Position numbers and translations under genes: made by a program. Positions 3,598-44,173 of a DNA stretch of 64,000 bases are shown here, piece after piece (positions within the stretch are counted from its first letter, which is position 1; the number at the start of each line of letters is the position of its first letter). The notes under the pieces were generated by a model that saw nothing but the letters and a program-made list of their open reading frames with translations, had not been told where the DNA came from and did no database searches. This DNA comes from Takakia lepidozioides (Eukaryota > Plantae > Bryophyta), in assembly GCA_030704615.1 (NCBI GenBank), contig CM060731.1, forward strand, positions 24,614,001-24,678,000, given 5' to 3'.

Positions 3598-3627
3598 GGG
3601 GGCCGGGGTGGGGGGGGGGAGAGAGAA

Positions 3628-3693
3628 TGTACTCATAAGACGTTGTTTGCCGTAGCCTTGTGGCCATACACCCCGTGCCCAACTTGGGCGGAA
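3628..3693 (-). mobile_element. Short 3'-terminal fragment of the same LINE
   Basis: tgtactcataagacgttgtttgccgtagccttgtggcc matches the family 3' end, and both flanks are GA-rich. Confidence 0.85.
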
Positions 3694-8917: not shown

Positions 8918-8987
8918 CTCTGTCAGAGAGAGAGAGGGAGAGAGAGGTCCTAAAACCAGTTCACAAAGCATCCCTTTAACTTTAGAA

Positions 8988-9018
8988 TGTACTCATAAGA
9001 CGTTGTTTGCCGTAGCTT
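8988..9018 (-). mobile_element. 31-bp LINE 3' micro-insertion with 15-bp TSD
   Basis: LINE terminal sequence flanked by CCTTTAACTTTAGAA at 8973-8987 and 9019-9033. Confidence 0.88.
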
Positions 9019-9130
9019 CCTTTAACTTTAGAAAGTACACGACCAAAGACAGGACATCTGGTGGGGGTCACAGCCAACTGAGTATCCGAGAATGAAATGA
9101 GGCTACTCTATATATGGTGGATGAATGTAC

Positions 9131-19395: not shown

Positions 19396-19504
19396 TTTGG
19401 CCTCCTTCATATGCAAACTATGGTATTCCAATTTTGGAATCTCCCTAATATGTCAGACCTGTGGATGTTCAGCAGGTTCCAGAGATGGACCTTGATCAGG
19501 GCAG

Positions 19505-20056
19505 ACATCATTGCGCACCCTCCATATCCCCTGTTTTCTGAGCTTGTCGAAGACTACTACAACAACAGCTTCTCAAACCCAAGCGGACCTGCATATACTC
19601 GTGAACAGGCCCTTCTAACCAACAGGAGACCAATGTTCAGGTACCAGCTTGATGCGTTGAGGTTGTCAAAAATATATATCATCTGGAGGTGCGGCCCATG
19701 TTATTGATTAGTGTCATGAGCACTCTAGAAGGGTTACAGAAACTATGCCTTAGTATGGTGCTGCAAGCGGGTTTGGACGACATGTTCTTTTAGAGAGCTT
19801 TTTGGCTAACATGTCATACCTGTGGATGTTCAACAGGTTCCAAAGACGGACTTGATCAGGGCAGCTGTAATCTTTCTAGAATGCTCCCTGGGACACTAAT
19901 CAACAACATGGGCCGCACCTCCAAATGATATATTACTAAAAAACTCAATGCATCAAGCTAGTACCTATACAGGCGTCTCCTGTTGGTTATAAGTTCACGC
20001 CTAGTTCACGAATATATGTAGGTCCGCTCTGGTTTGAGGGCAAGCCGTTGTTGTAG
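19505..20056. repeat. Diverged inverted repeat (left arm about 19505-19739; right arm 19865-20056, resuming at 20339-20360 and 26458-26482), plus a ~50-bp direct repeat at about 19457 and 19818
   Basis: ggaggtgcggcccatgtt versus aacatgggccgcacctcc, and cagcttgatgc versus gcatcaagct. The right arm resumes after two insertions. Confidence 0.75.
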
Positions 20057-20338
20057 AACAAGAACTAGAACTAAAGTCTTAGGTTAAAGCTAAAGCTCTC
20101 CACCCAATCATAGAAACCACTATCATACACTATCATACTCTTACACTTCGACTAGTGGCTTCACCCCACGCTTATACAAGAAGATGTCTAGAAAGTCTAG
20201 ATCATCTCTATGATCTACTTGGCCACTTCCTAGGATGGTGACCATCCACCTTCTAGCCATCCACCTTCCAATGGCGGGTTAAACAAGGTAATCTCTTAGA
20301 CTTCTAAATGGTTGGCCTTCTCAACTCTTAGTCCAACA
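20049..20338. mobile_element. Possible solo LTR (TGTTG..CAACA), no TSD found
   Basis: About 290 bp interrupt the inverted-repeat arm and have TG/CA-like termini, but the flanking 5-mers do not match. Confidence 0.35.
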
Positions 20339-21767
20339 ATCGAGAAGCTCAGGGGATATATAGGGAATTCCAAAAAGGCCTTGATGTGAAATGCATCGCA
20401 ATTCACTTGATCACCCCCTAAAAGTGCGCAACTCAATTGAATTGCAAGGGCAATTCAATTGAATTAACCCTAATTTGCAATTCAATTGAATTGTCGGCAC
20501 ACGATTCAATTGAATTGTAGTCAACAATTCAATGCAATTCAATTCAATTGTAATCTATAATTTTTAACTTATTTATATATATAATATATAATATATATGT
20601 ACATGTATATATTCAAATTATATTTATACACATATAAGAGTATAACCTAAAAATACATGTTGCCCGTCTCTATTCTTGCTGGCCATCTTTCTTGTGCCCT
20701 TGAGGAAATTGTGGAGTTGTGAAGCCACCCTCAGCCTCAGCGAGAAAGGGAGAGCCAGAGACGGAGACAGATCAGCAGCTTCTTGTGATTCACTGGTAGG
20801 CTCCGAAAAAAACAGACAAAATCAAACCTGACAATTGATGAAAGGCTTCCCCTACATCACCATGTAATCCCCTAACACTAGTACCTGGCCCAGGACAAAG
20901 AAAACAAAAAATATGTTCATCTTGACAATTATCAAAAATTTCGATACCCTTACAAAGGTATCATGTTGAAGTTGGGATGTGTGTTCTATACACTAGAAGC
21001 ATTCGTGTCTTTTCCGATTCGACTGTATGTCCGCGACCACTCCGGGAACCACTTGGTAGTAAACGGGACTACTGGAGAGTCGAAACAGACAATGTGGGCC
21101 CACGGGGGCATTTCAGACGGCGGACAGAAGTGGGGTCAACGACTCCGAAGTCGTAGCAGAATTCCGGGCTATTTTACGAATTGCGTAAATACATAAAATT
21201 TGAAAAAGCCAAAATTACAAGTGGTTGTAATTACTGCACATGCGACTACAAATTTTCTTTCCTAATTCGATTAATGGAATAAAGATATTTATTCATTAAA
21301 GTGAATATGTAGTCGACTCAACGACTCCATGAACCACTGCGCATTCATTGCACCCATGACTCGGCAGCACATTTGCTGACGTGGCTTTCACAAAAAGAGG
21401 TAAACAAAATGTGGCCTTGGGGGAATAGATATTTTAATACGTGCTGCCTCCACCTGGCAGAGACAAGGATGCAAGTGTTGCGTCGGTGGCGGGACATGGG
21501 AATGGAAATCCTGACACGACAAGGCCTTCGTATACTGTGAGCGCGCGTAGTGGCTTCTCAGAACGGTGTGACATCGGGGTCTTAGTCATTCATCATTTAC
21601 AGAATGTGCTGGATGGAGGCACGATGGAGCGCGCATACGGGCATGCCCTTCTGGCATCAATTCCCAAGTATCCACGCAAGGTGAGACTGCTGAATTGGGT
21701 TTTTGCCCGTCTAGTTTTCTGACAGCATGCTCGAAACGTTCATAGTGTCATTGAGTGGCATCGCAAT

Positions 21768-22470
21768 AATTTGATGTGTAGCTGCTTTTCCATTTCACAA
21801 GTTATGCAGAAGGCGTCACAGAAGAAGATCGCAAAGACGTCAAGGCTGAAGAATATGCCCTTTGGTTGTGAACTACAATCATATCATGCCAAACCCCATT
21901 TTGCCCACGCAGATGAGGGAGACATTCTGCATTTGCGAGTGGGACTTAATTCCTCTAAACCCAGCTTGAAGGTAGTTGTGACACCAGAGAAACTGGAAAC
22001 TACCTCCAAGAAAGTTGAAACTCGCAAGATAGTCATGTATTCGTCTCATTATCTCCAACTGGGATTCCGAGTTATCATCCGACCCTTTACATGTGCGCTG
22101 GAATGGAGTATAATTATGGTTTAGGCAGTTATTGCCACCAGACGTTCGCTTCTCCAATTTTTACATTTAAGGATGTGTCTGTGTTTATGGCACTCTTTCT
22201 CCCAAGGAGGCCTGAGTACCCCCCTGTACTTGCAAGAATTTGATGTGTAGCTGCTTTTCCCTTTCATAAATTATGAAGAAGCAGTCACAGAAGAAGATCG
22301 CAAAGAGGTCAAGGCTGAAAGCGTTCATTAAGGTTGTGAACTACAATCATATCATGCCAAACCAGCGGCGGCAGATGGTGTCATGAGACATTTTGCGATT
22401 TGCGCATAGGTGGACTTAATTTTGATGTTGACTTGAAGGCAGTTGTGACACCAGTGAAACTGGAAACTAC
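21768..22470 (+). repeat. Diverged ~235-bp direct duplication inside the CACTA element
   Basis: aatttgatgtgtagctgcttttcc..gaaactggaaactac occurs at about 21768-22003 and 22238-22470. Confidence 0.8.
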
Positions 22471-23302
22471 AGGTTAGATGATGGCGTGCTGCATCGCGAC
22501 ATAAACCTGCATTTGACATTCAGGCTTAGGATTCATGCAATTTGGTGCTAGTCAGGCCTGCACAGTTCCAGAGCACAAGTGGGAGCCCATCCGAGGGATG
22601 GGGACCTCGTAAGTGCTTCTTCATTTTGTACTCACCTTGTTTTTGCATCGCACTTGTACTACAAGGGGCAGAGCCATTTATCTGGCTGGAGGTTCAATTC
22701 CTCTACAAGTGAGCTATTCCCGTGTCACTACAATCAGTTAGATGTGTTTGTGGTGGTTGCTGGATTTGCGGCTCTGGGGCGTCTTGCCAAGTGCTTGCAG
22801 GGATCAACGTTAATGTGGACGTGGCAGTACATGTAGCAAAAAAACTCATTCGCTGGTGAAGAAGACCATGTTGCAACATATGTCATGCTATTGCTTCGAG
22901 AGTGCTGTTGTTGGGCAGGTGGGAGAATGCAACAACGGTGAGAAGGAAAGCAAGGGAAGCACAAAAAGGTGTCGTTCGGTCCTGCTCCTTTGGAGACACC
23001 CCCCATTCCACTGGTCTTTGTTCCTGGAAAGCATGCAGTTGGGCCAGAAAATGCATGCACACATTCACGTCTACTTCCCGTACATGAAGACGATCCTCTC
23101 CTCACATGTCAGAAACAATATTGGCAGAACAAAAAAAGGTTTGTTCACAAGACAGTACGGACCACATACCGGGACATTATCGATACTATTAACTGTCTCG
23201 CCCTTGCGCGCTTGCAGGACTGTACAAAATGGGTTCTAAGGACAATAAGAGTCCTTAGCATAGCTCTCGTCTATGAGCTGCTCGCTTAATGGACACTGAG
23301 AT

Positions 23303-26055
23303 TCAGCTGGGCTCACTATCTATATCCAAATAATCTTCCCCTTCACTACCCACATCTGCAATTTGCCTTGCGGTAATTACCAACCCTGGAATGTCTTCCT
23401 CATTAAAGGTAACTGCTCCTTCCAAAGAGACTGGTTCAGCCGTATCTGGTAGATTTCGTGGTTCCCTCAGACCCTCGTGGTCGGCATTCTCCCCTAGGTC
23501 CAGATCATGGACGTCGGCCACGACTCGTTTGGCCCGGGGGTCCTTGTGAAGAACCACCTTCCATCCCAGCGCATGGGTGTCATCTGAAAAGAAAACTTGC
23601 TCAACTTGCGATGGGAAGATGAATGGCTCTTCATCTTGTGGTGGCATTTTTCTGAAATCAGCAAGGAGGAACCCGTACTCATCCCGTTTCATGGTGGCAT
23701 TCTCTCCTACCATATTGGCTTTTACCCAAGAACAACGGAATAGAATTGGCTTCACAAGACCATAGTCTAGTTTAAGGATCTCTTTGATCACTCCTACATA
23801 TTGCACATGGCATGAAATTGGATTCTGATCTCGTGCACAGCTCCTACTCTCTTGTTCAAAAAATGATGCCACTCCGCTGTCATAAGTCACCAGGAGCCTG
23901 GTGTTGGCATCGTCCACTCTATAGTGATTGTCATATGAGTTCATTGACCGGTACGAAGTGGCAATCAGCCCTGGGGGGAATGACAGACTCACCATGCCCT
24001 CATCTGGGTTCTCGTTCTCTGATGCGTACACTGCAATTGCAGATCTGACCCACACTATAAAGGGCTGCAGCTCCTCCATTGTTGTGGGGTACTCCACCGG
24101 GGATATGCGCCTACGACCGCCCCTCCGCCATGCTTTTGCAAATGCACTCCGTTCCGTTTTCAGGCGGACCTTCTCCGCTGCGTACTTTCTGGCAGAAACC
24201 AAATAGAAGCTGCAACTCAGTCCCCCTGACCAACACCGTGCTGTACATGCATGCCACATGCAGAGTGTGTGTCCTTTCAAGCACACTGTAGTGATGCAGC
24301 CTACTTCATAATCACTTGCAAGCAACAACCAAGATCTACGAAACACCCTCTGTAGTCGTCTGAAGCACCCTGTTAGTACACGATCCCACTCCCATAGTGG
24401 CCGGAATGACTTGTGACAATATATATGTAATTCCAGCATACAAAGACCATTAAGAATAGCACATGAGGGATGTAAGTTGGCACCCACTGTCTCCATGGTG
24501 TCATGGTTGTTGTGTTGTTCAGCACATAATCATGTGCCACATCCCGAAGGCGCGGGCTCATGGCACGCTTTGTTCCACCACCTTCTAGGACCTCGCCTAC
24601 AACTCCTTCTTCCTCGTTCTCGTCCCACACCCGTCGTTGTATTGCATCAAATGAAGACATATACTCTGTCATGAAGCCCAGGGCTTCGTCGCGGATGTAG
24701 CCCTCCTCCATACTCCCCTCTGGCCGTGCCATGTTGCGTACATACCCCTTCAGATCCTTCATGTACCTCTCCATGGGGTACATCCACCGGCTGGCTACGG
24801 GCCCACACACATGCAACTCCTCTACAAGATGCACTAGCAAGTGCGTCATGACGTCAAAGAATGATGGAGGGAATTCTTTCTCCAGCAAACATAGGGTCAT
24901 AGCCACATCCTCATGCAACGATTTAATGTCCCTCGGATCCCACACCTTCGCACAAATCTTCCTAAACACTCGACTTACACGCATTATGGCTGTTCGAGGA
25001 CCTGGCGCCATCGTACCCCGAATGCACACTGGCAAAATCTGTTGCATCATCACGTGTAGATCATGTGACTTCATCCCCGACCATTTCTTGTTTATGGCAT
25101 GCTTTTGGAAAGCACCCGAGAATCCGGTTCGCACTTTCATGGCTCCCAATGTCTTCAAAAAAATCCTCTTGCTCTGATTTGGTCAGGACGTATGATGCTG
25201 CTGGCATAAGCACTTTGCCTGGTCTATTTGGATCAGGCCTTAGCCACAGATGTGACCGTATCCCTTCAATCTCCATGTCCTTTCGTACGTTTATCGTATC
25301 CTTCTCCCCAAAGATAGTCTTCAGAATGTTCTCGCAGAAGTTCTTCTCACAATGCATGGGGTCCAGGAGGTACCGCTGCAAGAGGTTCTGAAATGCCAAA
25401 TGTCCTCCCATGAGACCAAGTTCTATGGGCAAAAAAAGTAGAATATGTGGCAGAAGTTGTCCAAGTTACTACATTCTGCTTTCAACAACTCCACGATCCT
25501 CTCCACAGTGAGGTGTACGACTTCAACATCTACTGCATAGTAGTTACACTGACTTAGGAGTTGGTGGAAGGACTCCTGACAGTAAAGGTAATTCCAGGAA
25601 GCACAATGTGAAAGAAAGTGAGTGAATGGGGGGGGGGGGATTCATGCACCTTCCAGTATGGCAAATCCCAAAGGATTGTCCGGCGCTTCACCCCGTGCTC
25701 CATGGCTGGATCCGCACTACTTCTGTCTCTCCCTCCAATCTTCATGAACGCCTCTTTCTCCTTTGCAAATTGCAATGTCTCCTCCGGTGTCACAGCATTT
25801 GGTGCCATTCTCTTTTCAACACATCCATTGAAGTGCCTTCCTGCTCGTCGGTAGGGGTGGTTTCTTGCAAGGTAACGTCGATGCCCCATGTATATTGTCT
25901 TCCCTAGTGGCTTTGAGTGCCGTGAATCCACATAGGGCCCACAAATGGGGCACCATTTGTAGCCCTTCGTCTTGCAACCCGCAACAAGGCCATATGCGGG
26001 GAAATCGTGGATTGACCACATGAGTATGGCACGGAGGGTGAAACTCCGTTGCCCT
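23303..26055 (-). pseudogene. CACTA transposase (Transposase_21 / DUF4218 / DUF4216-like), 5'-truncated, frameshift near 25160
   Basis: WSIHDFPAYG..CPIC, LPYWK, LDPMHCEKNF, GMKSHDLHV, FPPSFFDVMTHL, WMYPMERYMKDLKGYVRN, YVGVIKEIL.LDY, EPFIFPSQVEQVFF. Confidence 0.93.
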
Positions 26056-26500
26056 ACACCAACATCCACAAAGAGAGACAATCCCGCTTTTACAAGCGCT
26101 TCGTGACTTCCTCTCTTTCTCTCTCCCTCTCTCACTCTCCCTTAGGCTTATCTTGGGCTCAAGCCTTACCACGGGCAAATGATTGACAGACGGACAGCAA
26201 GAATGGACAACAAGAATAGACGGGCAACATGTATTTTTAGCTTATACCTGTGTATGTATATATGTATAATTTAAATATATACATATATATTATATACAGA
26301 AATAAGTTAAAAAATTATAGATTACAATTCAATTGAATTGCAAATTAGGGTTAGTTCAATTGAATTGCCCTTGCAATTCAATTGAGTTGCGCACTTTTAG
26401 GGGGTGATCAAGTGAATTGCGATGCATTTCACATCAAGGCCTTTTTGGAATTCCCTAAATATAGAGGGTGCCCAATGATGTGCGAGGATATGACATATGG

Positions 26501-27526
26501 TAGGGAATTCCAAAAAGGCCTTGACGTGAAATGCATCGCAATTCACTTGATCACCCCCAAAAAGTGCGCAATTCAATTGAACTAACCCTAATTTGCAATT
26601 CAATTGAATTGTCGGCACACGATTCAATTGAATTGCGAATTGGCAATTCAATTGAATTGCTGACTACAATTCAATTGAATTGTAATCTATAATTTTTAAC
26701 TTATTTCTGTATATAATATATATGTATATATTTAAATTATACATATATACATACACATGTATAAGCTAAAAATACATGTTGCCCGTCTATTCTTGTTGTC
26801 CGTCTGTCAATCCTTTGCCCGTGGTAAGGCTTGAGCCCAAGATAAGCCTAAGGGAGAGCGAGAGAGGGAGAGAGAGAGAGGGGAAGTCACGAAGCGCTTG
26901 TAAAAGCGGGATTGTCTCTCTTTGTGGATGTTGGTGCCAATTTATGGCTATGTACATACACCAAACATGATACCAATGTAAGAGTATCAACGTGTAAGAG
27001 TTTGATATATTAAACTTATATAGAACACACATCCCAACTTCAACATGATACCTTTGTATGGGTATCGAAATTTTTGATAATTCTCAAGATGAACATATTT
27101 TTTGTTTTCTTTGTCCTGGGCCAGATACTAGTGTTAGGGGAAGCCTTTCATCAATTGTCAGGTTTGATTTTGTCTGTTTTTTTCGGAGCCAACCGTGTTT
27201 CTTTTGCCAGTGAATCATAAGAAGGTGCTGATCTGTCTCCATCTCTGGCTCTCCCTTTCTCGCTGAGGCTGAGGGTGGCTTCACAACTCCACAATTTCCT
27301 CAAGGGCACAAGAAAGAGGGCCAGCAAGAATAGACGGGCAACATGTATTTTTAGCTTATACTCTTATATGTGTATAAATATAATTTGAATATATACATGT
27401 ACATATATATTATATATTATATACAAAAATAAGTTAAAAAATTATAGATTACAATTCAATTGAATTGCCAATTCGTAATTCAATTGAATCGTGTGCCGAC
27501 AATTCAATTGAATTGTAAATTTAGTT
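26501..27526. mobile_element. Non-autonomous TIR element 2 (~1 kb, opposite orientation to element 1); right TIR interrupted by element 3
   Basis: TAGGGAATTCC terminus at 26501. 26790-26935 is the inverse of 26056-26200, and 27018-27330 is the inverse of 20680-20990. Confidence 0.85.
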
Positions 27527-28489
27527 TAGGGAATTCCAAAAAGGCCTTGATGTGAAATGCATCGCAATTCACTTGATCAGTGCGCAATTCAATTGAATTG
27601 CAAGGGCAATTCAATTGAACTAACCCTAATTTGCAATTCAATTGAATTGTCGGCACAAGATTCAATTGAATTGCGAATTGGCAATTCAATTGAATTGTAA
27701 TCTATAATTTTTAACTTATTTTTGTATATAATATATAATATATTATCATGTATATGTATATGTATATGTATCGTATACACATATATATACGAGAGTATAA
27801 GCTGAATATACATGTTGCCCGTCTATTCCTGCTGCCCGTCCATCCTTTGCTTGTGGTAAGGCCTAAGTCACGAGATGAGTCGCGTAGCCTAAAGGAGAGA
27901 GATGAGAGAGAGAGAGAGTACGAGAGCGAGGGAAAAGGAGAGAGAAATGAAGTGATGAAGGCTTTTTAGGGCAGAGGTGCCCTAAAAGTGAAATGATCAA
28001 ATCAGTTGGAGGACGAGAAGTAGCGAGAGAAGAATGCAACAACAAGAGATGTATGATGGAAGCCTTCTTGGATCACCAAATGACAAGATCTGCCCATGAG
28101 TAAGCACATTCCCGTACTGGCATGAGTTCCCCCAATCATTGATAAAGATATCATTTTAGCTAAAGCTGTACTTCTTATGTACGTGCAGGTGACTCATGAG
28201 CTTTGAGGAGAGAACTTTAGGGGTAGTAGAGTGGGTTACCAAACGCTCCTCAACACACACACTGAAAGAAAGAGCTTGATCACATGGTTTGTCTTCAACC
28301 CGCCCACACTGTGTACTGTGGTTTGCTAACACATTTTAGGATAGAGTAGTTGTTGTTTCAAAGTACATTTGGTTCATCTACTTGATAGTCTATGTGAACT
28401 TTAGTGAGGTAAGTCCTATGGGGAGTGTGTGAGTGGATGCAGTGACTACAGAATTAACAACAAACAATTACAACAAGGGCAAGGTCGAA

Positions 28490-30228
28490 GGCATTGGCAC
28501 TGGGGCTATTAAGCAGAGATAAGACAGATCATGTGAGCATGGAAAACAACCATTTGGATGGTGACAAAGTAGTGGATGATTTAGTACTTTATGAGGAAGC
28601 AATGTTGAATGAGGGTGCCACAATGAAATCAATCGCCACTGCCCTTTCTTTTGATCATGTACAACCATTGAGAAGAGCTATCAGAAGTCCAAGGGTCCCC
28701 TTTCAAAGTTCATCATCAATTGAGTGTCCGACGCTTGTGTAAAAAGATTTAAGAGTTACTTCCTATTGAAGAGAATGGGACAAATTGGGGAATGAGAACA
28801 GTGCAATCTGCCTTAAGGAGGTCGAATTGGCGGATTCCTCGAAGGAAGGTGGGGGAGGCTTTGAAAATCATCTCACCCTACCATTATGAGCGTAGGAGAA
28901 GGGCACAGGCAATTCGGAGGACTCAGTATAATGTCACAATGCCTATGGCTCTATGGCACATTGACTGTAAGTATTTTATCTCATGCATCTTAATGTTCTT
29001 TGAAGATGCACATGCAAGACGTTTTCTTGCATTACATATCGCACAAAATTGTAGGCAAACTAAAACATGTATGCAATTCGTGGTGCAGCTTATGACAAAT
29101 TGGTTATGTTTGGTCTTCGAGTACATGCTGGCATTGATGGGCCTCTCATTTTGTTTTATGGGTGAACGTTGCAAGAAACAAGAAAGAAAAAACCATTTTC
29201 AAAGGATATCACGATGCAATTTCCAAGTTTGGAGCACCTTTACGAATTCGATCTGATTTTGCAATAGAGCACTCTCTTATAAAACAACACATTGAAGCCA
29301 CACGTTCTGAAACACCCAATCCGTACTTGACTGGGTCTTTCACACACAATCAGGTTAGTGTTCTATACAATTCTATCTTGCATATCAACTTTACGTTTCT
29401 GTCATATTTCTTGGTTCATCTTTATTAATCATTGAGTGTGTAATGTTGTGCATATTTCTAATATTTTGTGTGGTGTAATCACCACGTTAGAGGATTGAAC
29501 ACTTTTGGCGGCATCTATGGGAGAAGGTAATGTTCTACTACAAAAATTGCTTCCAAGCAATGGTCAATGATGGATTATTGGATATGGACGATCCGTGGCA
29601 ACGAGAATCTTTTATTGACGTATATATGCCCATAGTACAAGAAACTGTTGATGAATACGTGAAGATTTGGACTGGACATCGAGTTCGCACGATTAATGAA
29701 AACGGTCGATATCGTCGATCACATGTTCCTGCTTGTTTCTTTCGCGAGTATGAACGTTTGCATGGGTAAGCTCATGGTTTTCTCTTGTTTGTACTTTCAT
29801 TCTTAAGCTACAATTTACATTGGAATGTTATTCTAATGTGGTGATGTGTTTGATCATGTAGATGGACCAGCCACCTTATTGATGACCCACGATTTAGGGA
29901 AGACCCCCAACACATTGGTAACCAAGACTTGGGGCCTCGTGGGAATCAAAGGTGGCGATGTGCAGGTGGTTTGCATGACCTTCCCACCAAAGGAGCTGAA
30001 CTCATTCCTGACATTGTTCGTGTCCGTGCACAAGCTTATGAAATTGGAAAGGTTGGGAAGAATTCGATCTCTTGTTTTCATCTCCACTACTACATGTCTC
30101 GGTATTGTGGTTTTGCAACGCATGAACATAGATATTCTGATCAATTGGACCTCATTGGTAATACCGTGTTAAGTAGGGAAGCTCTTCAACTTTTAATTAC
30201 ACAAGCTCTTGTATGTAATTGTGATTAA
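28490..30228 (+). pseudogene. Intron-containing DDE transposase / integrase core, IS3EU-like (introns about 28967-29088, 29354-29490, 29766-29861)
   Basis: ALWHID|SYDKLVMFGLRVHAGIDG(fs)ASHFVLW..FGAPLRIRSD..YLTGSFTHNQ|RIEHFWR..WTGHRVR gives a D-D-E triad. 1-bp frameshift near 29141 and stops upstream. Confidence 0.85.
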
Positions 30229-31004
30229 GTGAATAAGCGAGACAATCACATTCAAAGATAATTGTTTTATGTCACGTACTTTGAGGATTTCTGTTAAATA
30301 AATGTCATCTTTTCCCTTCATCATATCCATTGTCCATATTGAACCATACACCCTAAACCATTATCATCTCCCAACCATACTACTTGGGTGCAGGGCCTGG
30401 GTTGTACGATCTCTGGAGGGTTGTGAAATTGTTGGGTTTCATTGGGAAGTGCACAGCGTGAGGCTCATGAGGCCGCCTTTTATCTCCAACAATCTTTGTC
30501 TGCCCCACATATGAGACAATGATGACCAACTTGCCTCATTTTCAAGAACCCTCTATTCATAATCTAAGAATTTTGCATACAATAATAAAAATCTGAATAT
30601 ACACTCATGGAGACACGAATATTCAACCAGGACTTATAGTTGCACCCTTGTCTCTTATATGCAATGTAGCTTGAGTTTAAAATCTGATAACTTGTGTTTT
30701 GTTGATTGGAGTCATGGTTTCTCCAACTGATGTATAGCTTCCATAGCCACCGAGAGGTCTATCTCTCCAGGTTCTGGAACACTCCTGTAGCCTGTACAAC
30801 CACAAAGTGGAATTTTTTTGCTTCCATGTAATATTTGTTTTTCTCACATAAGTGGTCAACAACCTTACACTTGGCATGATGATGATAGGTATGACAGGTA
30901 TGATGATGAATGGTATCACTTGGCATGATAGGTTAGGAGTCTACTTTGAGATGCCCAAGTCAAGTTTCAACCTCTACTGAATGGACGCCCTTTGCGCAGG
31001 TGTA

Positions 31005-31388
31005 GCGGTATAGCGCTTGATTACAACGAAACTTAGTTAGTTTTGGTAAATTAGTCTATATGCAGGTAGAGGTATCGTCATTGGGTACTAGCCCTGTTTG
31101 GTATACTCACAGAGGTACAGCGCTTGATTCCAAAGAAACTTAGTCAAAACTAGACTATATGTAGGTAAGGGTATCGATATGAGGTAGTTTCCCTATTTGG
31201 TATACCTACAGAGGTATAGCGTTTGATTCACAAATAAATTTTGCTAAATTAGTGTATATTTATGTGGAGGTATTGTCATGAGGTAGTAGCCCTGATTAGT
31301 ATACCAATAGAGGTATAACTTAGCTATATATGCTAGTAGAGGTATCGTCATTATGTAGTAGTGATCCTCTTTGGTATACCTATAGAGG
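31005..31388 (+). repeat. Tandem array of a ~100-bp unit (~4 copies)
   Basis: gaggtatagcgcttgatt-type unit starts at about 31005, 31112, 31211 and 31310. Confidence 0.85.
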
Positions 31389-32946
31389 TTGGTGCATTTG
31401 TGAGTTGAGATCCATTAAACAATGGGAATTTTTGGAATTCCCTGCATGTTGTGAGGAATTGGCAGGGTTTTGTCACCAATGCTCAAGTGTCACACGGTTA
31501 GCAGTCTTCCATTGTGTGCTAGCTTAATTCTTCAGTAACCTACTTGAGCTCTAAACTTCTGAAAAAAACACCCGGATTGGCTTACTTGAGGTATACAATA
31601 TGGCCACTTTAGAGATACGCTATACATGTGAGCATAAATGCTTGTCATTTTTCAGAGAGCGCCGGCAGTCTGAATGACGATATTGTAACTATGATATATA
31701 AGAAACGATAGTGTAGAGAAATTCCCTGGCAGTGGGCTTCAGTTACAAGGAATAAATTGACTAGCATTCTACCTGCATGAGGCACTCCATCGCCAAGCAA
31801 TGTTTGGGTTTCTTAGACTAGGGGTTACATTGTGACGCACTCCTGTGGTCGCAACAAACTTCTGCTTTCTCTTTCCTTCTTTCCTCTCTCGTTGACATAG
31901 AAAATTGAGAGAGGTTATGGTATGGGAGAAGAGAGAGGGGATGCAATTGACATCATGATGAGTTGAAGGGGGGAGCAAAGGGAAGTGGTAAATTCGCAGA
32001 GAAGCACAGAGGTCCCCGGGAGACTTACTTTTGTAGTTGCAGCGTGAAGTGAAAGCCAGGGTGGGTAGTATGGCTGTCGATGAGTTCAGGGCGAGTTATG
32101 CTAGTGAGACACCTTCCCTGAAATGTGTGTGTGCGCTGTCTTTGTAATTCAACAGATATGGACCAAGAATTATCACTTGGCTTCACTCGCTGAAAAGAAC
32201 ACGAGAGAAGTCTCCTTCCTTATGCTTCCATCACCAGGAAGTGAGTTGCTGACTTCCTTGGAGTTATTGAGAAACAATGGTATCATTTCGATTCAATTTT
32301 GGCTGCTGTCATTATGGCACGATCTCCTAAACTTCTAGCGCGTGTTCAGTTTGTTCACTTTCAATAATGGGCTTCATGGTGGTTATCTTTTTAGGTTCTT
32401 AACAGGCTTATTAGCATATTAATGGGCTTTCAATAATGGGCTCCATTCCCCTTCTAACATCTTCAAAATAACCATAATAACGGTAATTTGGTGTGTTAAG
32501 TTGTCCCTAACACCCATCCAAAATTATGTTATGTATTTCCATCTATTTCCACCTTTTTTATTTTGCCAACTTAACCTTAGGTGAGATTTCAACCCACAAT
32601 GCAGATTTGTGCTTGTTGGTCTTGCATCGAGGAGATATGATGGAGCGGCATATTGTTGGCGAGACAGATGCAATTGTAAGTCCACTGCTATGCGAACTTC
32701 AGGAATTGACAAGGTCTTGTTTTGATTATGTTTTGGATGTAATGTTTGGGACTGAGCTTCGGGGAATCCTTGCACTTCCTCTCTTTTCTCCCGGTCTGGT
32801 TTTCCTTCTTGTACTATTTTATCCTCATCTCTGCAGTTTTCTATACCTTTATCTTCTATGTATTGACATTTGATTGAAATTGTAGACCAGCAAACCAGGA
32901 GAGCAACGATGGGCTCTCTCCTTTCTAATCAGCATGTGTTTGGTAG

Positions 32947-33488
32947 AAATTACGACATCTTTTTGACCCGGCATATTCAAAGATTAAGCTAGCATCGAAA
33001 CCTATCCTTACTTCCAGCGTGAATCATTGGTGAATTTCTACCAGAAGCATGGGATAGTTGTCACTGCCCACACGCCATTGGGTGGTGGGGTTGATAACAC
33101 GGAATTTGTTGGGCATTGTTTTGTGTCTTGATGACGCTGTTCTTCAGGTTTGCATCTTCCCTAAGTGCTCCCTTATGAATTATTGACTTCAGTTGTGATT
33201 CACTACTCTATGTAAGGCGTGATCTCTCGCTTCCCTCTCTCGAACACACACACTATAAACACACTACATGGATTGCCAAGAAAGTACAACAAGACACTGG
33301 CACAAATTGCGATGCACTGGGGCATTGAGCACAAGACAATTATCATTCCTAAGTCAGACAAGATGGAGAGATTGAAGTAGAACCTTGATGTCTTTGACTT
33401 TGAGTTGACCGATGATGATATCAAGCCCTTGACAAAAGCCTGCGCACCAACGACCCTGAGAATTTTTTATGTATCAATCTCTTCTGAG
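32947..33488 (+). pseudogene. Captured 3' exons of an aldo-keto reductase (mannose-6-P reductase / sorbitol-6-P dehydrogenase-like)
   Basis: NYDIFLTR..ETYPYFQRESLVNFYQKHGIVVTAHTPLGG, an intron, then KYNKTLAQIAMHWG..IIPKS..NLDVFDFEL; contains stops and indels. Confidence 0.85.
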
Positions 33489-33589
33489 GATGAGTTTGAC
33501 TGGTGGGTGGTGCTTACAATCTAAATATGTTTGCATGTTTCATCTGCACCTTGAGACACTAACCAATTTCATACTGTCAAGCCCTTATA

Positions 33590-33950
33590 GTGCCAATATA
33601 TGGCTATGTACATATACCAAACATGATACCACTGTAAGAGTATCAACGTCTAAGAGATGATATATTAAACTCTCTATCGAACACACAGCCCAATTGCAAC
33701 ATGATACCTTTGTAAGGGTATCGAAACAAGATTATTGGAGATAATTCTCGAAATGAACATGTCATTTGTTTTCTCTGGGGTTGTGTCATGGGGGCCAGAT
33801 ACTAGTGCCAGGGGACTACATGATGATGCAGGGGAAGCCATTCATCAATTGTCAGGTTTGAAATTGTCTGTTTCTTTCAGAGCTAGCCATATTTCTTTTG
33901 CCAGTGAATCACAGGAAGCTGAAGCACTTCTGAGTAAGCCATCTGTCTCC
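33590..33950 (+). repeat. Diverged homolog of the internal sequence of TIR elements 1 and 2
   Basis: gtgccaatatatggctatgtacat..catgatacctttgta..tcatcaattgtcaggtttga matches 26934-27245. Confidence 0.85.
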
Positions 33951-34362
33951 CAAAGGGTCCCCCAAAAAATGAGATGGAGCTAGCCCTGGCATGCACATCA
34001 AACCCATTTAGCCCACAAGCGGTTTAAGGAGGTTTGCATAAACATTTGGCCAAGGTTTGAGGGCTTTGGCTCATTCCAACAACAGTATTTACCAAAGCAC
34101 ATAACGTGCTTGTAATAACACTCGGGTTGCATGTGGGGTTCATGGGATGCTGAATGGAAGTTGAGGAATTTCAATGGCTGGAATGGGAATCGAGAGCATG
34201 AATGTTGAGTTCTGCAATAGTGATGAGATTATGGTTGTAGTGCAACGTTGTAGTGGGTTTGTTATTGGTAGCCCAACACTTGCAAGCCACATGCCCACTC
34301 CTATGAAGGTGTGACTGGTGATCTAGTGACCAGTCACTTAGTCAAACCAGCGATAATGGATT

Positions 34363-34599
34363 GTGATGACAATATATGGATCCGACATGCCATCCTTGGC
34401 ATTCCTGGCAAGGGATGTGCACGACGTAATCGCAGGTGCGGGAGGGCTTTTGTGCGTGGAAGGGGGCCGACAGCCAAGGTCACATGCAGACGAGAATGAT
34501 CCACCCTATATGTGTGATTGGGATTTTTGTTTTCCTCAACAATCTATCATGGTTGTTTGCAACCCTATAACAGAGGACTATACATTCGTCCCGCCTTAA
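34363..34599 (+). pseudogene. Fragment of an F-box/kelch-type gene
   Basis: MPSLAFL..AGAGGLLCV..MVVCNPITEDY..VPP repeat signature. Confidence 0.55.
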
Positions 34600-35277
34600 T
34601 GAAAGCATTTGGAAAGCAGGTACACTAGCTACATCCGTTCACTTATTTGTCTCGGACAACCTCTTCATCTTTCAGATCTTGGGTTGATATGTGATTGTCT
34701 TCAGACATATTTATTTTCGGGATAGTGGACATTTCAATTCTTTCCCTCTTCTTTCCTCTTTGGTTTCATTGCTATGCATCTTGCAATGTAAGTTTGCAAC
34801 TCCATACATGATCAGTTTTGGCAGGTGGCTCGCATGGATTTGAACCGCTCATGCGACAAAGGGTACACCATCAGCACGAGACATGCCTGATGTCTTGGAG
34901 ATGGTGGTTGCCATCTAGAGGGGAGTGGGTGTATTGGCATGATACTAGCGGGTTGCGAACCAATAGTTGTGGACAAAGCTCGTTGGCACTTATCGATGGA
35001 ATTATTTGCATTAGTTGAACTTCGCAAATGTAAAGACACTTTCCAGCAGTTTGCCTTCAGGTCATAAGTTTTCTGGACGACAATCAATTGATTATTGAAG
35101 CCCCACTCCTTCTGCAAGCACCGCTCGAGGCAAAGTTCCATGTAGACGTCAGGAGATCCTTGGAGCTATACAGCCAAGCAGCAACCACCAAGGCCATTAA
35201 TTTGTTGGTGCATATTCACATCATTTAGGAGTTTTTGTGTCTCTAACAAGAACCCCTTGTCTGTCATAATCATACCT

Positions 35278-35625
35278 TGAGAAGTTCGGCATCAACATAA
35301 TTTGTTGCTAGCTACTAGTAGTGTCTAAGTTCCTGTTCCTGGGGATCCCATAGAGCAATACACCATGTCCAGTAGATAACAAATCACAGGAAGGCATATA
35401 ACCTGATCCACTGTTCGTCCTTCATATGTACAGTAGTTTGCGAAACATAACATTTGTGAGAGGATCATCAATTACCTCAAGTGCCTCAATTGATGCCAAC
35501 ACGAAGGACGAATGAGCAGGGTTCATAATAGGCAGTTCGATGGACTCTCGAGGCTCCATAATCTGTTCACTTAGCCCTCCAACAGCAGAGTAACTCACAT
35601 TCCTTGCATCCTCGCACGGGCCTTG
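35278..35625 (-). pseudogene. RPT4: Degenerate fragments of 26S proteasome AAA-ATPase RPT4
   Basis: [32 protein letters not shown], and a decayed GVLLYG..PGTG..TLL..DA..LK|gt exon. Confidence 0.75.
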
Positions 35626-36023
35626 AGAACTAAAGAATGTTCGAAGTACATGCTCGAGGGGATTATCAAACATGATCTGCAAGTTTCTGGTTATACCTCA
35701 ATCCCACCTCAATAACTCCTCAGACCACAGATCTCTCTAGCTACACATACTTGACTTCAGAACTAGGTCCTAAGTACCACCCAGTCAGGAATTCCCAATG
35801 AGACGTTTAAACCATAGTACGATGTCCGATGATTTGCATGCCAAATTTCCTGCCAGGAGTAGCAAAAAGGTGTGTAGATTCATCCGACACTACTGTAAAT
35901 ACATGGAGTGCCGTCAACTTTCTTCTATGGTAAATGACATGTGAGGTAGCGTTGGTTGTGGATGCACCAAGTGATTTTGGTCAAAGCACATCACGTGCTC
36001 CACACATGAGGAGAGTGGTACTG

Positions 36024-38963
36024 ATCCAGCACAACAGTCTGGATATGTGCATCCCAATTACAATTGGAGGAGAACTCAACGCCCAAGTAAGTGTAGGAAG
36101 GGAGGACCGGGATCTCTTGGCTACCCCACTGCCACTTAAGATCACTTCCTCCCTCTCCTCCGTCGTTGAATGCTACCACTGCACATTTGCTGACATTAGC
36201 CTCTAGCCCCCAAAGATCAAAGTATGTCTTCACGCAATCAATCAACTCCTGGAGATTGGTTGGAGTCTCCCCTATGCCTGCGAAGTCATCCGCAAACATA
36301 AGGGCTGGTATGGTGGTATCACCCACCCTTAACCCAAATCCCTCACTTTCCACATCCTCGAGGAGTTGATTGATGAAAACATTGAAGAGCAGAGGGGATA
36401 GAGTACATTCTTGAGCTACACCTTGGTCTAAGTCAAAGAAGTTGGACTTCTGTCCGTTAACAGTAACTCAACTTTTGGTGTGAGCACACAAGTTGTGGAC
36501 AACTCTCCACATCTTTCCCTTGATCCCACAAGACCAGAGGCGGAACCATAGGCCATCTCTCCACACTGTGTCATAAGCCTTTTTGACATCCAGGAAAAAG
36601 ACATAAGTGGGTTTCCCTTCTTTTTTCCTTCCCTGGATAATCTGGCTTAGAGTGAAGATATGATCCACACAGCCCCTGTTTCGCCGAAAGCCAGCTTGGC
36701 CTTCGTGGAAACAACCTCTAGACTCCAGATCAACCTCGAGACGAGTACTTATAAATATGCAGAATGTCTTGCCAACAACATTGAGGAGCGTGATGCCACG
36801 GTAGTTCCCCGGTTCTTCTCTGTCACCCTTCTTGTATAGATTGACAACGACCCGCTGTCGCCAGCGAAAGGGGATCATTTCAGTCTTCCAGAGAAGGTTA
36901 AAGAGGAGAAGTAGGGCCTCTATCATGGGATCGCCACCGTGCTTGATAAGCTCGTTGACAATACCATCTGGTCCACCAGCTTTACCTCCATTTAAATGTT
37001 CAATTGCTTCCACAATCTCAGAAGAGCTAATGGGAGCATTATAAGCATTGAAATATACTCCAGTTCATCAGGGCTGTTTTGAATCATAGGAACAGTTTTT
37101 CCAACTGTGTCCCTCCATTCAGCAAAAGACCCCTCACTGTTAGACCTAGAAGTTCTGCCAATGATACTGTAGTGAGTTTCAAAGGTTTTGACAATGTCAA
37201 CCGATGAAGTCACCACTGCACCTTTAGTAGTCTTCAGCGCTTGTACTTGCTAACCGTTTTTCGGTTTGTACAAACGTTGAAGGGCCAACCAGAATATCTT
37301 GTCATTACCACCATGTAGGTTTGAGTTTATTTCACTGTATAACTTGTCCCAGTATAATTTTTTCTGAGACCTAACAAGCTGATTGATATCTTTACGGAGC
37401 TGGTAGTACCTCGCCCACAATTCTCTGTTGGTTTCCAAATTGCAGCACTGTTTATAGAGGGCTCGTCTCTCAGCTATCTTGAGTTTAATCTCATTAGTCC
37501 ACCAATTAACTGCTCTACCGCAGACAATTAGTTTCCTTCGAATGATCTTGTCAGCCACGGAGGAAACGAAACTCTCCCAAGAGTCCACTGCTCTTTCGAC
37601 TTCAGATCTTGCGTTAACAGAGCGTGACTGAAGTTCTTGGAGCGATTGGACAAAATGAGGGAGAGCCTCTTGCAAGGCCTGGACGTACTCAGTCTTGACC
37701 TCCTCATTGTGGAATTTTTCTATGCGCCACTTCCGAATCGAACGTTTCACAGATCTCTTGGTGGTGGGAAAACACCTTTTGATCTCAGTCCAAACCAGGA
37801 AGTGGTCAGAGCTACCAATATCAGTTCTGTCGATCAACACATCAGCACACTAGGGGAACAAAATTTTGTCCATTATGATATAGTCCACAATGGAACGTTC
37901 CCCAGTTTGGGGTTTCTCACGAGTCCACTGCACTTGGTCACCTCTTGTCCTGTTATTCAAGGTCAAAAGCTGAAGCTCTTTTGGACAGTTAATTAACCGT
38001 CTGCCATTAGAATTCAGCTCGTCCTCACCAAAAGGTCCAATGATATCGTCCTGATGGATCCCTTTGCCCACCCAGGCATTGAAGTCCCCCAATAGTACCA
38101 CCTGACCTTTGGCAAGGAACGAAGCATAATCCAGCTTCAAAACTTGTGAGGCCTTGTCTGCGTCAGCACTAAGGGTCCCCTCTGTGGGCATGTAAACACA
38201 ACCAACAAAGAGGTCCAGTAGAGTACTCATGCCGCCCTTCAAATTCAGTTTTAGCCAGATATTATGCTCGTACCTCAAACCCTTGTTGATAATTTCACAA
38301 TTGTCAAACAAGAAATCACGGACGAACTTCTTTGAGATTGAATTGATGCGGGACTCTATTAGAAGCACTTTTGGTCATTGCAACCTTCAATGTACCCTTG
38401 TTATCAAGTCTCGAGATGGTACCATTAGCCATGAAATCCAAGCCTAAGCTAGAGCATGTAGTTATAAAGGACACATCGTCCATCCTGGGATTCACCCCAA
38501 AAACTACACATGAAGCCCTAGATTTGGCATAAGTAACCAATTCCCAGGGATCACCCTGAGGAGTGTTGATGTTGATAGGAGCTAAATTTTTGATTGTTTT
38601 CGCAGGCCATAAGTTTAAGCACAGGAACCAACCCGAGCCCAAGTGTCGAGTATGCTAGACAGAGCATACGACTGCCCAATTTGGGCGGAGGGGCTGCCCC
38701 CAAGTAGGAGTCCGCTTGTTACCATTCAGAGATCACACTCCAGGGAGTTGCAGGGAATGGCCCGTGTAGGCATATTCTAAAGAGGGAAAGGCCCCAAGCT
38801 TTCCAACTAAATCCAATGCACTACCTTACCTGAAGCAAAGCGCTTAAGGTCGAAACAAACAAGGACACGAGGTCACAAGGCCGGCATTTAGTCACAGAGA
38901 CATTAATGTACTCCCGTTTCAAGTCCACCCAATGTCAATAGGCTTCCTAGAGGACAGGGAGAA
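36024..38963 (-). mobile_element. LINE copy 4 (5' end intact, 3'-truncated after the RT core, internal deletion in EN)
   Basis: FLDVKKAYDTVWRDGL, LSPLLFNVFIN, ALMFADDF, YTYLGVEF. The 5' end abuts a (GA)n tract. Confidence 0.92.
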
Positions 38964-38964
38964 A

Positions 38965-38967
<3 letters not shown>

Positions 38968-39021
<54 letters not shown>
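38968..39021. repeat. (GA)n microsatellite
   Basis: Perfect GA run directly outside the LINE 5' end. Confidence 0.95.
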
Positions 39022-39024
<3 letters not shown>

Positions 39025-40039
39025 AATGAAATGGAATGGACTTTATAACGTCTGCAGAAAACTCAAAGAGCTTATGGGAGAAAATGGAAAAAAACATGAG
39101 AGAGGAAACAAAACCAGAGCCAAAAAACAGCCCAAAAGCAACTACTGCTCAAGGGATTGTCTAAGGGTCAAGGCCTCGTGCAGGTAAGCTGCCAAGCATT
39201 TGTGATCCTCATAGTGGAAGACTTCAGTGAGAGATTGAGTTCCGCGGAATAGACAGTGGAATCTCCCACGGATCTTGTAATACAGAGGGCAATAGAAGAA
39301 GTGTTCTTCAGTTTCAATTTCCTGATTACGCCCCGTGCAAGCTGGGCATAGGCGGTCCTCCCGTTGCAGGTTTAGGGAGAGAGAAAATGACCTGAAATGG
39401 TACTTTATAACGTCCGCGGAGGCTCAGAGTTGAGAGAGAGAGAGAGAGAGATGAGAGCCTCTTCCACTCCAAGCTTTCGGAAATAATGAACAACCTAACT
39501 ATGTGGCGTCAATTTGTCCACTTTTGATTTTCCTTTGTTGAGGATGGGTGCTACGATTGTTCTGATTGTGGTGAGGTGCAAAGAGCGAAGAGAAGAAAGA
39601 ATAGCACTATCTGGGAGTTTGAGGTTCTTCTTCAGGGTCTTTAGGGTCTGGTTGTTTGTTTCTCCCTTGGCACCTAAGGTGATATTAGTTGTCCTCCGCA
39701 TACATATCCACCACACCATAAAGAGAAGAAAGCTCTTTGAACTTACTTGAAGCATCTTGTATTTCCGAGGGTGCAGCATCCTTCAAACTCAGGATGGACA
39801 CGGTTGCCTTACCAAATGTGTCAGCTCTGCTGCTGCCTCTTCCTGTCCACCCAACCATGACACGTACCATGAAAAACTCACTTGACATTTATATCCCACT
39901 GTTCTTATTGAGTAAACCAGAAACAATAGACATCATGTAGCCAAGTGCTACGCGATGAACAGCTGTAGATTCTAACAAGCGAGGACTGGGATAAAAACAG
40001 AGATAAGAATGCGTACGTTGCCAATTTATCTCGAGTTTC

Positions 40040-40315
40040 TTTGGCTATCATGCGTTATACCTCTGTAGGTATACTAAACAGGGCAACTACCTCATAACAA
40101 TACCTCAACCTGCATATAGGCTGATTTGACCAAGTTTCTTTGTAAGTCAAGCGCTATACCTCTGGTGGTATACTAAACAGGGCTACTGTCTCATGACGAT
40201 ACCTCCGCATAAATATAGATTAATTTGGCCAACTTTTCTTGTAAAATGAAATACTATACCTCTGTAGATATATCAAACAGGGCTACAACCTAATGACGAT
40301 ACCTCTACTAGTATA
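40040..40315 (-). repeat. Inverted copy of the ~100-bp tandem array (~3 units)
   Basis: tatacctctg at 40056, 40155 and 40255, the reverse complement of the 31.0-31.4 kb unit. Confidence 0.85.
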
Positions 40316-40748
40316 TCTCTCTCTCTCATCTCTCTCCTTCAGGCTACGTGACTCATCTCGTGACTTAGGCCTTACGACAAGCAAAGGATGGACGGGTAGC
40401 AGGAATAGACGGGCAACATGTATATTCAGCTTATACTCTCGTATGTATATGTGTATACGATGCATATACATATACATATATATGATAATATAATATATAT
40501 TATATACAAAAATAAGTTAAAAATTATAGATTACAATTCAATTGAATTGTAGTCAGCAATTCAATTGAATTGCGAATTGAATTGTTGACTGCAATTCAAT
40601 TGAATTACGAGTTGACAATTCAATTGAATTGCCAATTCGCAATTCAATTGAATCGTGTGCCGACAATTCAATTGAATTGCAAATTAGGGTTAGTTCAATT
40701 GAATTGCCCTTGCAATTCAGTTGAATTGCGCACTGATCAAGTGAATTC

Positions 40749-43445
40749 CTGCTGGATTCTCAAGCAAGAAGATCCAGCTTCACTGCTGTTAACTATTTCA
40801 AGGCTTCTTTCTGTTTGCTGAAGTTGTCAAGGTGTGTGGATTGTTGCTCCGCAGGTATTGAAGCCAGAATTCAGTGCAGCCAGAAATGGCCCGGCTGGCT
40901 GCCTCCAGCATGGGGATTCTCGAAAACCCAGTTTCTACAAGATTCAGCAGCTTCCTCTGTTTGGCGCCATTCTTGTGCTCAGTTGCACCGTTCTGGCAAT
41001 TGTCAAGCTGTGGATGCATTATTGTCTGCTGTGTTTGCTCCTCAGCGACTAGGCAGGGCCCGGAATTTTTCCCCAGCTGGGTTGAGGAGATCAGTGCCCT
41101 TCTTGATGCCATCTAAGATGTCGTCGCAGAGGGCCTGCGTGTCTGCCGCGGATTCGGCATCGTCAGCAGCGTCGGTGGAGGATGAACAGGCTGAGATCTC
41201 GGAAGGGACCAAGGATATATCGCCCGAGGGATTGACCAGAGAGCGCGTGATGCAGGAGGTGATGCAACGGCTCACAGAGGAGAACCTGGAGGAGGCTGCC
41301 CACAAGTACAATACTGAAGAGGAGCTCTTTGCGGAAATTGATTATGCGCAGGTCTCCTCATCCTTTACAGTTTCTTGCTGTTCTTCATACCCTGTACACT
41401 AACGATGCCTTAGTGCGACGTTGAAATGATGTTTTGACAGGCTCTCTTGATCCGGATAAGCAGGAAATAAGTCAAGTGTCTGATGGTTTCTAGTCAGGGG
41501 TTTAGGCGCAAGGGTTTATGTTTATTGTAAGCATATATTTCTTGTATTCCCTCTCTCTGTCTCTGTCTCTCTCCCCCTCTCCCCCCCCTACACACCGAGA
41601 GACGACTGGACCGATCCAAACTAATTACAATTATGGCATTTCTTCCTATGAGTCGGTCGCCGGGTGGTCTCTTCAATAGTAGCACTGCTCTGGCTGCCCT
41701 TCGGCCCCTCTTTGATGATCTTGCTCTTTTGTTCTGATCCAAGCAACTGGAATGTAGCGTTCACAGATCGCCCATTCTCTGGCAATCCAGCTGCAGTGTG
41801 TTATCTCCCATATGAAAAGGATGATGCCTGGCTGCAACTCATTGCCCGTGAATTTAATCTGTCCGAGACTGCATTTCTGGTAAAGAGACGTTCTACACTG
41901 AAAGAAGGCAAAGGCAATTCATTGCCGGAGGTGGATGAAAGTGGTAAGCGTCTGAAAGCTGTGAAGAAGAACATGGCTGGCACCTGTGGAAAATGAGTTT
42001 AACCTATGCTGGTTCACCCCTACTGTTGAGGTATGCTCCCATGCTTACACACACCCACATGCATCTTTGGCATGTCCTAGCACATACCCTTTGCAGTGAG
42101 AGCCGGTTCAACTAATTTCCAATGCTGTCTGATGGGGTTCCCTTCCTCTTTGTTGCGTTGCACTTCTAGAGTGTGTTGGTTATTTATCTCTATATCGGGA
42201 GTTGAGGTGGGAGAAACTGTATTAGAGAGGGTATACTTGTGTGTAGAAGGATAGTGACTGAGGAGTATGACGGTCCGCAGGTGGATCTTTGTGGGCATGC
42301 CACTATTGTGTCTGCCCATCTGCTGTTTGTATCTGGCATTGTGGAGGGGGACACAGCACTGTTTCACACAAGATCAGGAGTGCTCAAAGCCACCAAGGTT
42401 TCTGGCTACGAAGAGGATGAGGAGCCACCTTCAGAGGTGGAAGAGAAGCCACTTAAGAGATAGCGGCCAGCAGGCAAAGGTGTTGTTGAGTTGACTTCCC
42501 GCTGGTGCCTGCCTTGGCCTGCAGTGATGCTTCTCATCTCTCTGATGCTCTTGGAGGTATTACAGTTACATGGATTGGACAAAGCAGCTTGGGTGACTAC
42601 CTGGTACTCCCTTTCATCTTTAGATCTCTAACACAAACACAGACTAATACTTAAGTCATGCACACAAGCAACAGTGGGGGGATGCTTGCATGTGCAGGGA
42701 GAGTTAACTATGGGAAAAGAATGGTCAAACCCCTTATCCCCTGTCTGCTTTCTACCTTGGCAGTTTGAGGATGATAGAAATGAGCTGCTATCTTGGCAAA
42801 TAGTGGATGCTTTTATGTGGTTGTGCTTTTCTTTGCATCCGGTGTTGCAGCATTGAATACATATAGATAGAGATTAAAGGTACAGGTGCAAAATCTGTCC
42901 ATTGCCTCTAACCCATTTTCACTTGTGGACATGCAAAGGTGGAAGTACCTTCAAATGAAGATGTGGAAAGTGTAAAGCCTCAATTAGACAAAATGCTGGA
43001 TCTCAGTGGTCGGGGGGGTGTCATTGTGACGGCACGCGCAGCTGAAGATAGTGAATATGACTTCGTGTCACGTTTCTTTTGCCCCAAAAGTGGAATATCT
43101 GAGGTATGCAAAGCATTGATGGCTGTCGTGTTTGTGGAAGTCTTCACTTAAGTGTGATGTGGTGTTGGTGTCCTTGATGACATGCTGTTTGATTGGAACG
43201 AAACTATTTTCTTTCCTTTTTGCAGTTCGGGTGGTCTGGTCGTGCAGAAGGGTATGGCATTCTTGGCTAGTTAATAAAGTATTCTGTGAGCAACATTAAA
43301 TTGTTGTCTTGTCCAAGTAATAGCAGATGAGTGGGATGTTTACATGACTTTTTAAGAACATCATATTTGAGAAAACAAGAATCTGTGTATATGAATGTGC
43401 GTTACCAGGATCCAGCCACAGGGAGTGCTCATTGCACATTGGCAG
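40749..43445 (+). pseudogene. PhzC/PhzF-like (phenazine biosynthesis-like isomerase) pseudogene
   Basis: AFTDRPFSGNPAAV, EFNLSETAF, WFTPTVE|VDLCGHAT, YDFVSRFFCP..E|DPATGSAHC. Frameshifts near 41985 and 42495, in-frame TAG at 42461, no ATG upstream of the transit-peptide-like region, and 3' exons absent. Confidence 0.88.
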
Positions 43446-43864: not shown

Positions 43865-44173
43865 CCGGTTCATCGATTCATCGACACAACTGAAATTGGT
43901 ACCTTTGACCACTTTCTGGTTTGGACTGAGATCAAAAGGTGTTTTCCCAACACCACGAGACCTGTGAAACGTTCGATTCGGACGTGGCGCATAGAGAGCT
44001 TCCAAAATGAAGAGGTCAAGGTTGAGTATGTCCAGGCCTTGCAAGAGGCTCTCCCTCATTTGTCCACTCACTCCAAGACCTTCAATCTCGCTCTGGCAAT
44101 GCAAGAAACGAAGTCGAAAGAGTATCGAAAGACTAGTGGATTCTTGGGAGAGCTTCGTCTTCTCTGTGGCTGA
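43865..44173 (+). mobile_element. Internal fragment of the RTE/RTEX-like LINE
   Basis: IDTTEIGTFDHFLVWTEIKRCFP..EEVKVEYVQALQEALPH. Confidence 0.88.

Follow-up and report, generated by a model that had tools for sequence, protein, structure and literature searches.

The 64-kb window analyzed here (contig CM060731.1 of Takakia lepidozioides, positions 24,614,001 to 24,678,000 of assembly GCA_030704615.1) contains a real and ordinary cluster of broken GingerRoot (IS3EU) transposons, a dead new member of the family. The cluster very probably represents one nested DNA transposon family of the IS3EU/GingerRoot superfamily in a bryophyte. GingerRoot was described in 2019 from Selaginella lepidophylla by Cerbin et al. 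(PMC6839031) as elements of 3.9-12.9 kb with TA..TA ends, a 6-bp target site duplication (TSD), and an integrase-like DDE (Asp-Asp-Glu) transposase; they carry gene fragments, in which case the transposase has often been lost, and matches were reported in 18 mosses and 3 lycophytes. Kojima and Bao (2023; PMC10045372) united GingerRoot with IS3EU in a single lineage (99% bootstrap) whose defining features are TA..TA ends and TSDs that are usually 6 bp long. An earlier note on this DNA, made from its letters alone, had called the cluster IS3EU-like, and that assignment holds given the TA..TA ends, the 6-bp TSD, and an IS3EU-type integrase-core DDE. The same note presented the superfamily as a novelty in a land plant, but GingerRoot had already been described in Selaginella and mosses (PMC6839031) and joined to IS3EU (PMC10045372). 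The superfamily has therefore been published, as has its occurrence in mosses and clubmosses, and the present copy is dead.

Comparison of the window with itself revealed six related terminal arms spread over 20361-40747: the left and right arms of elements A and B, the left arm of element C, and one last arm (Table 1). Over a common stretch of about 300-430 bp, their substitution identity is 90-97%. The arms carry palindromes with a 24-bp period, and all 25 occurrences of the 10-nt palindrome core in the window fall within the six arms. An exact 11-nt tip motif was found at 20361 (+), 26457 (-), 26501 (+), and 27527 (+), and allowing one mismatch gave six matches in all, compared with a shuffled mean of 1.1. 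TAGGG is kept at the tip of four of the six arms, and all four intact tips start with TA, in line with TA..TA termini. The three elements that were first thought to share terminal inverted repeats (TIRs) with intact tips do have real arms and tips, but only A is complete, with both tips present, and the cluster ends at 40747, where the last arm stops, rather than at 40749. Three types of arm can be distinguished. A runs from an X arm to a Y arm, B from Y to X, and the left arm of C and the last arm are both of type Z; in the left arm of A, the first ~330-410 bp are the TIR common to all arms and are followed by an X-specific inner part. Each pair of same-type arms is 97.1% identical (with one gap in the Z pair), whereas the two ends of A are 93.9% identical to each other with 14 gap openings.

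The 6-bp TSD of A was supported by a paralogous empty site within an older inverted duplication (19432-19739 versus 19865-20360 plus 26464-26500). The site was rebuilt best when exactly 6 nt were removed (score 54), compared with 37-48 for other lengths and 42 for a duplication of TA, and the latter model was rejected. Because it concerns one site with a core of 29 nt, this test is supportive but not statistical. Between its arms, A holds 5 kb of cargo consisting of gene fragments and a piece of a CACTA element, and it has no counterpart of the 85-nt core seen in B. The two copies of a host-gene fragment gave no Pfam match and are presumably ribosomal protein L27-like, judging from a motif recognized by eye. 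The CACTA piece is 98.9% identical to Logan contig L032 (run SRR15431198), which suggests a young CACTA family in this species or a close relative, and it ends abruptly at the arm junction of A.

The transposase gene lies 1 kb inside the left arm of C. Its catalytic residues show D..D-34-E spacing, as counted by hand across exons, and PF24764 scored above its cut-off on two of the exons. The spliced DDE protein proposed in the earlier note is supported in its motifs and in its three GT-AG introns, but not in its reading frame, which is broken by a frameshift near 28677 in the 5' coding part and by a 1-nt deletion near 29140 in the HAGIDG/RIRSD exon, where relatives are in frame. Because of these two frameshifts relative to its homologues, the C copy is dead, and what had been called an autonomous-type member is a frameshifted pseudogene. 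The introns had been read as a sign of long residence in this genome, a measure that we rejected. Introns occur at the same positions in relatives whose proteins are only 40-60% identical, and they thus reflect the bryophyte lineage to which the element belongs and not its residence here; introns 1 and 3 keep both codon position and phase in most relatives. The donor of intron 1 is mutated in relative L006, and some relatives have a further intron that is absent from the window transposase; on the sequences compared, the introns are best read as a lineage trait with gains or losses. Separately, in L012 (7795-10468; also in L013 and L014) the intron 1 position holds about 1.9 kb and overlaps a predicted gene that matches ceramidase. 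No HHCC, YPYY, or GPY motif was seen in the window transposase translations. No long terminal repeat (LTR), reverse transcriptase, or polymerase context surrounds the gene, the only nearby reverse transcriptase belonging to a separate long interspersed nuclear element (LINE).

All transposase searches and trees were performed exon by exon. A search with exon 3 retrieved the 72 relatives, while a word-indexed homologue search with the same exon returned no match. Among the named relatives, the moss Ceratodon purpureus and the liverwort Calypogeia fissa are nearest, followed by fishes, a limpet, a ctenophore, and a mushroom. In the exon trees, which are short, single-exon trees with no IS481 or LTR outgroup and no Repbase rows, the window exons grouped with bryophyte-type rows apart from the animal and fungal rows (100/98 for one exon, 94/94 for the other), to which identity is only 24-38%; on this grouping the host would most likely be a moss. 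A close relative, P0002, had no match to a plasmid insertion sequence (IS) or in the PDB at E 1. Two independent relatives carry the transposase within complete ends. L004 has 420-bp TIRs with TAGGG..CCCTA tips, a perfect GGTGGC duplication, and a transposase about 1.5 kb inside its left end, and L006 has TATGG..CCCTA tips, TIRs of about 180 bp, and a perfect CAGGAG duplication, with a transposase and a HECT gene between them. In both, the transposase sits ~1.5-1.8 kb inside TA-tipped TIRs, the same layout as at the left end of C, so that the TSD length and the linkage of transposase to TIRs, which the earlier note had proposed to check, are borne out at these two loci. TA tips were likewise found in L005. 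In L001, L005 (left arm only), L007, L012, L020, and L022, the fetched DNA showed no pair of TIRs flanking the transposase. HECT ubiquitin-ligase fragments were observed at L006:13469-13924, inside the TIRs, and at L007:2226-2459, upstream of the transposase.

The cluster resembles published GingerRoot elements in its TA..TA ends and 6-bp TSD, in element sizes of 4-13 kb, in having numerous truncated copies, in carrying gene fragments where the transposase is lost, and in a bryophyte and lycophyte host range. By eye, its DDE core is ~45% identical to the published query Sl-GR-005 (about 53 identities in 117 positions). It differs in its palindrome arrays, its 1-kb compact derivative, the AT-rich TSD at the one site, and its introns, which do not appear for the transposase in the main text of the GingerRoot paper. 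With the Repbase IS3EU elements of animals and fungi it shares the TA..TA ends, the 6-bp TSD, a PF24764 core, and no HHCC motif seen. The third base is G here rather than the Y of the TAYGG..CCRTA ends reported for rust-fungus families; the earlier note took the TAG..CTA ends as a departure from a TAY..RTA consensus, but the defining termini are TA..TA and relatives have TAGGG tips (one of them TATGG/TAGGG), so TAG ends were rejected as a new signature. IS481EU, Ginger1/2, Polinton, and LTR integrases have the integrase-like DDE fold in common with this family, but IS481EU has TSDs of ~4, 15, or 25 bp rather than 6 bp, and Ginger1/Ginger2 and Polinton have TG..CA and AG.. ends, respectively, rather than TA..TA. 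The prokaryotic IS3/IS481 elements share a distant origin of the transposase, according to the papers, but differ from the spliced gene and long TIRs seen here.

Several observations weigh against the assignment. Only one TSD, that of A, is present in the window, and it matches at five of six positions. C has neither a TSD nor a right tip, and its transposase is tied to the TIRs by position, in a layout like that of the relatives. The TIRs of 330-430 bp exceed the 100-150 bp of Selaginella, a species-level figure that lies outside the superfamily definition in PMC10045372. Described IS3EU elements (Repbase autonomous families) encode two genes, whereas no homologue of the other open reading frames of the relatives, HECT included, was found in the window at E 1e-4; a HECT second gene was accordingly rejected for this copy, and its loss is possible in a copy so decayed. 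The trees also lack an IS481 or LTR outgroup and rest on single, short exons. A different reading would make the arms a TA-targeting, Tc1/mariner-like family of miniature inverted-repeat transposable elements, or clients of the CACTA transposase in A, with the DDE gene as a bystander. The tips do begin with TA, a CACTA fragment is present in A, and C has no TSD, but we regard this reading as highly improbable. The TA-duplication model was the worst but one at the empty site, and relatives of the DDE gene carry the same kind of tip together with 6-bp TSDs. CACTA as the mobilizing enzyme was rejected because the tips do not read CACTA, the TSD length is other than 2-3 bp, and the CACTA piece is cut at the arm junction.

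Within a GingerRoot cluster, the anatomy of B and C is less straightforward. B and A lie tip to tip, 43 bp apart. The right arm of B lacks its outer ~105 nt, the right tip being lost where C begins, and B has no TSD. That absence, together with the way B mirrors both ends of A and the register of its tip with a tip-like 16-mer of the older inverted duplication, could point to an inverted duplication by template switching at tip-like microhomology, or to an assembly artifact of the palindromic arms. Either would be improbable, since B differs from the arms of A by about 3% plus indels and has an 85-nt core that is absent from A but has a homologue at 33590, so that B was not copied from A. With arms and its own core in B, and cargo without that core in A, the two would be sister deletion derivatives. 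The right end of C is uncertain, and one 13.2-kb element reaching 40747 is a candidate anatomy only. The two Z arms could instead be the same end of two copies in opposite orientation, in which case the transposase element would end close to the 31444 tip or close to the X-type relic (34032), and some of the supposed cargo of C would be plain intervening DNA. We consider this a real though tentative possibility. A, which is one element by its TSD, has unlike ends, while the Z arms are as similar as the same-type ends of separate copies; the X-type inner relic at 33590-34032 is oriented as a right end, and the 99-bp arrays repeat the inverted arrangement of the A/B pair. Conversely, L004-type relatives have near-symmetric 420-bp TIRs (91% identity) and spans of 8.7-10.2 kb, making a 13-kb element with nested insertions normal, and the 31444 tip has only 16 bp in common, with a flank that matches the left flank of C at three of six positions.

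The 16-mer at 31444 is possibly an alternative right end of C or the tip of a sister subfamily. Tip-like 16-mers of the 19447/31444 kind are expected about once per 30 shuffled windows, and these two are perhaps the ends of an older sister subfamily. They were also seen to be mutually alike slightly further inward. Some 8.7 kb separates the two 99-bp arrays, which may mark the termini of a distinct nested element or else be subterminal repeats of a sister subfamily.

Under the GingerRoot reading, an ancestral autonomous element would have encoded a spliced, IS3/IS481-like DDE transposase that, by analogy with the biology of DDE transposases, most likely bound the 24-bp-periodic palindromes of the long TIRs and paired the ends. 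Assuming the cut-and-paste chemistry of the superfamily, the ends would have been cut at TA and joined to staggered target bonds 6 nt apart, with host repair producing the 6-bp TSD. Internal deletions could then have given rise to the compact, non-autonomous B and to A with its CACTA piece and gene fragments, both presumably mobilized in trans by an intact copy at another location, and C would have landed in the right TIR of B and later decayed. Nothing at the locus is now self-mobile. Four intact and two degenerate tips lie within 12 kb, B is separated from A by 43 bp and lines up with an older tip-like site, and C begins inside the TIR of B. These positions raise the idea that insertion in this family is biased toward its own ends, either beside them or within them. 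We find this unlikely. The pile-up at this one locus may come from local hopping, a transposon-rich compartment, or end-targeting, and target choice in the superfamily is reported as non-specific. End-targeting is a known habit of the prokaryotic IS911, IS30, and IS21; if it were true generally here, that habit would have been kept in a eukaryotic IS3-like superfamily.

Table 1. Features of the GingerRoot cluster and its surroundings (positions in the 64-kb window)
Feature	Position	Strand	Remarks
Second degenerate tip-like 16-mer	19432-19447	-	In register with left tip of B; older inverted duplication
Paralogous empty site of A	19505-19533	-	27/29 nt match
Left TSD copy of A	20355-20360	+	GATATA
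Element A	20361-26457		6,097 bp; complete non-autonomous GingerRoot; Pack-type cargo replacing own transposase; both TAGGG tips and 6-bp TSD with one mismatch
Left arm of A, X type	20361-20990	+	97.1% to right arm of B, 93.9% to right arm of A
Host-gene fragment in A, two copies	21763-22470	+	Diverged (78%); window self-comparison
CACTA/EnSpm transposase fragment in A	23303-26056	-	5'-truncated, frameshifted; PF02992, PF13960, PF13952
Right arm of A, Y type	26057-26457	-	Tip intact; 97.1% to left arm of B
Right TSD copy of A	26458-26463	+	AATATA
Element B	26501-27526		1 kb, non-autonomous; Y arm, 85-nt core, X arm; inverted relative to A
Left arm of C, Z type	27527-27915	+	Tip intact
Transposase 5' coding part	28521-28966	+	To first catalytic D (WHID); matches L001/L004/L005 across break
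Intron 1	28967-29088	+	GT-AG, phase 1, 122 nt; position shared with L001, L004, L005, L007, L012
Transposase exon with HAGIDG and RIRSD	29089-29353	+	Second catalytic D; PF24764 E 5e-8
Intron 2	29354-29490	+	GT-AG, phase 0, 137 nt; in L006, L007; absent from L001, L002, L004, L005, L012
Transposase exon with RIE..WR	29491-29765	+	Catalytic E; PF24764 E 5e-12; 72 relatives
Intron 3	29766-29861	+	GT-AG, phase 2, 96 nt; position shared with L004, L005, L006
Transposase last exon	29862-30228	+	To stop codon; 34-40% to L001/L004/L005/L006
99-bp tandem array	31004-31390	+	~2.7-4 units; inverted relative to 40034-40315
Degenerate tip-like 16-mer	31429-31444	-	One mismatch to family tip
Aldo-keto reductase gene fragment	32988-33480	+	Between arms of C; weak PF00248, below gathering score
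Relic of B core and X-type inner arm	33590-34032	+	~78% homologous
LINE fragment	36031-38962	-	Nested between arms of C; PF00078, PF14529
Inverted copy of 99-bp array	40034-40315	-	Abuts inner end of last arm
Last arm, Z type	40316-40747	-	Outer 39 nt lost; no TSD; 97.1% to left arm of C

Overall, the locus is of little significance and offers small details for curators of transposable elements. It adds a moss family whose long TIRs bear palindromes, together with a non-autonomous form of 1 kb and a Pack-type form that includes a piece of another transposon. It also adds intron positions that are conserved, gained, or lost among bryophyte GingerRoot transposases, of which we found no description.

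Other features of the window were observed alongside the cluster. Copies of a LINE family lie at 250-9033, 18158-19394, 36031-38962, and 43876-44173, some of them arranged head to tail with GA tracts at their ends. An exon of a PhzF-like host gene (PF02567), starting about 50-900 bp to the right of the last arm, occupies 41664-41996. An array at 61565-63198 consists of palindromic repeats of 44 nt, approximately nine in number, which bear no relation to the GingerRoot arms.

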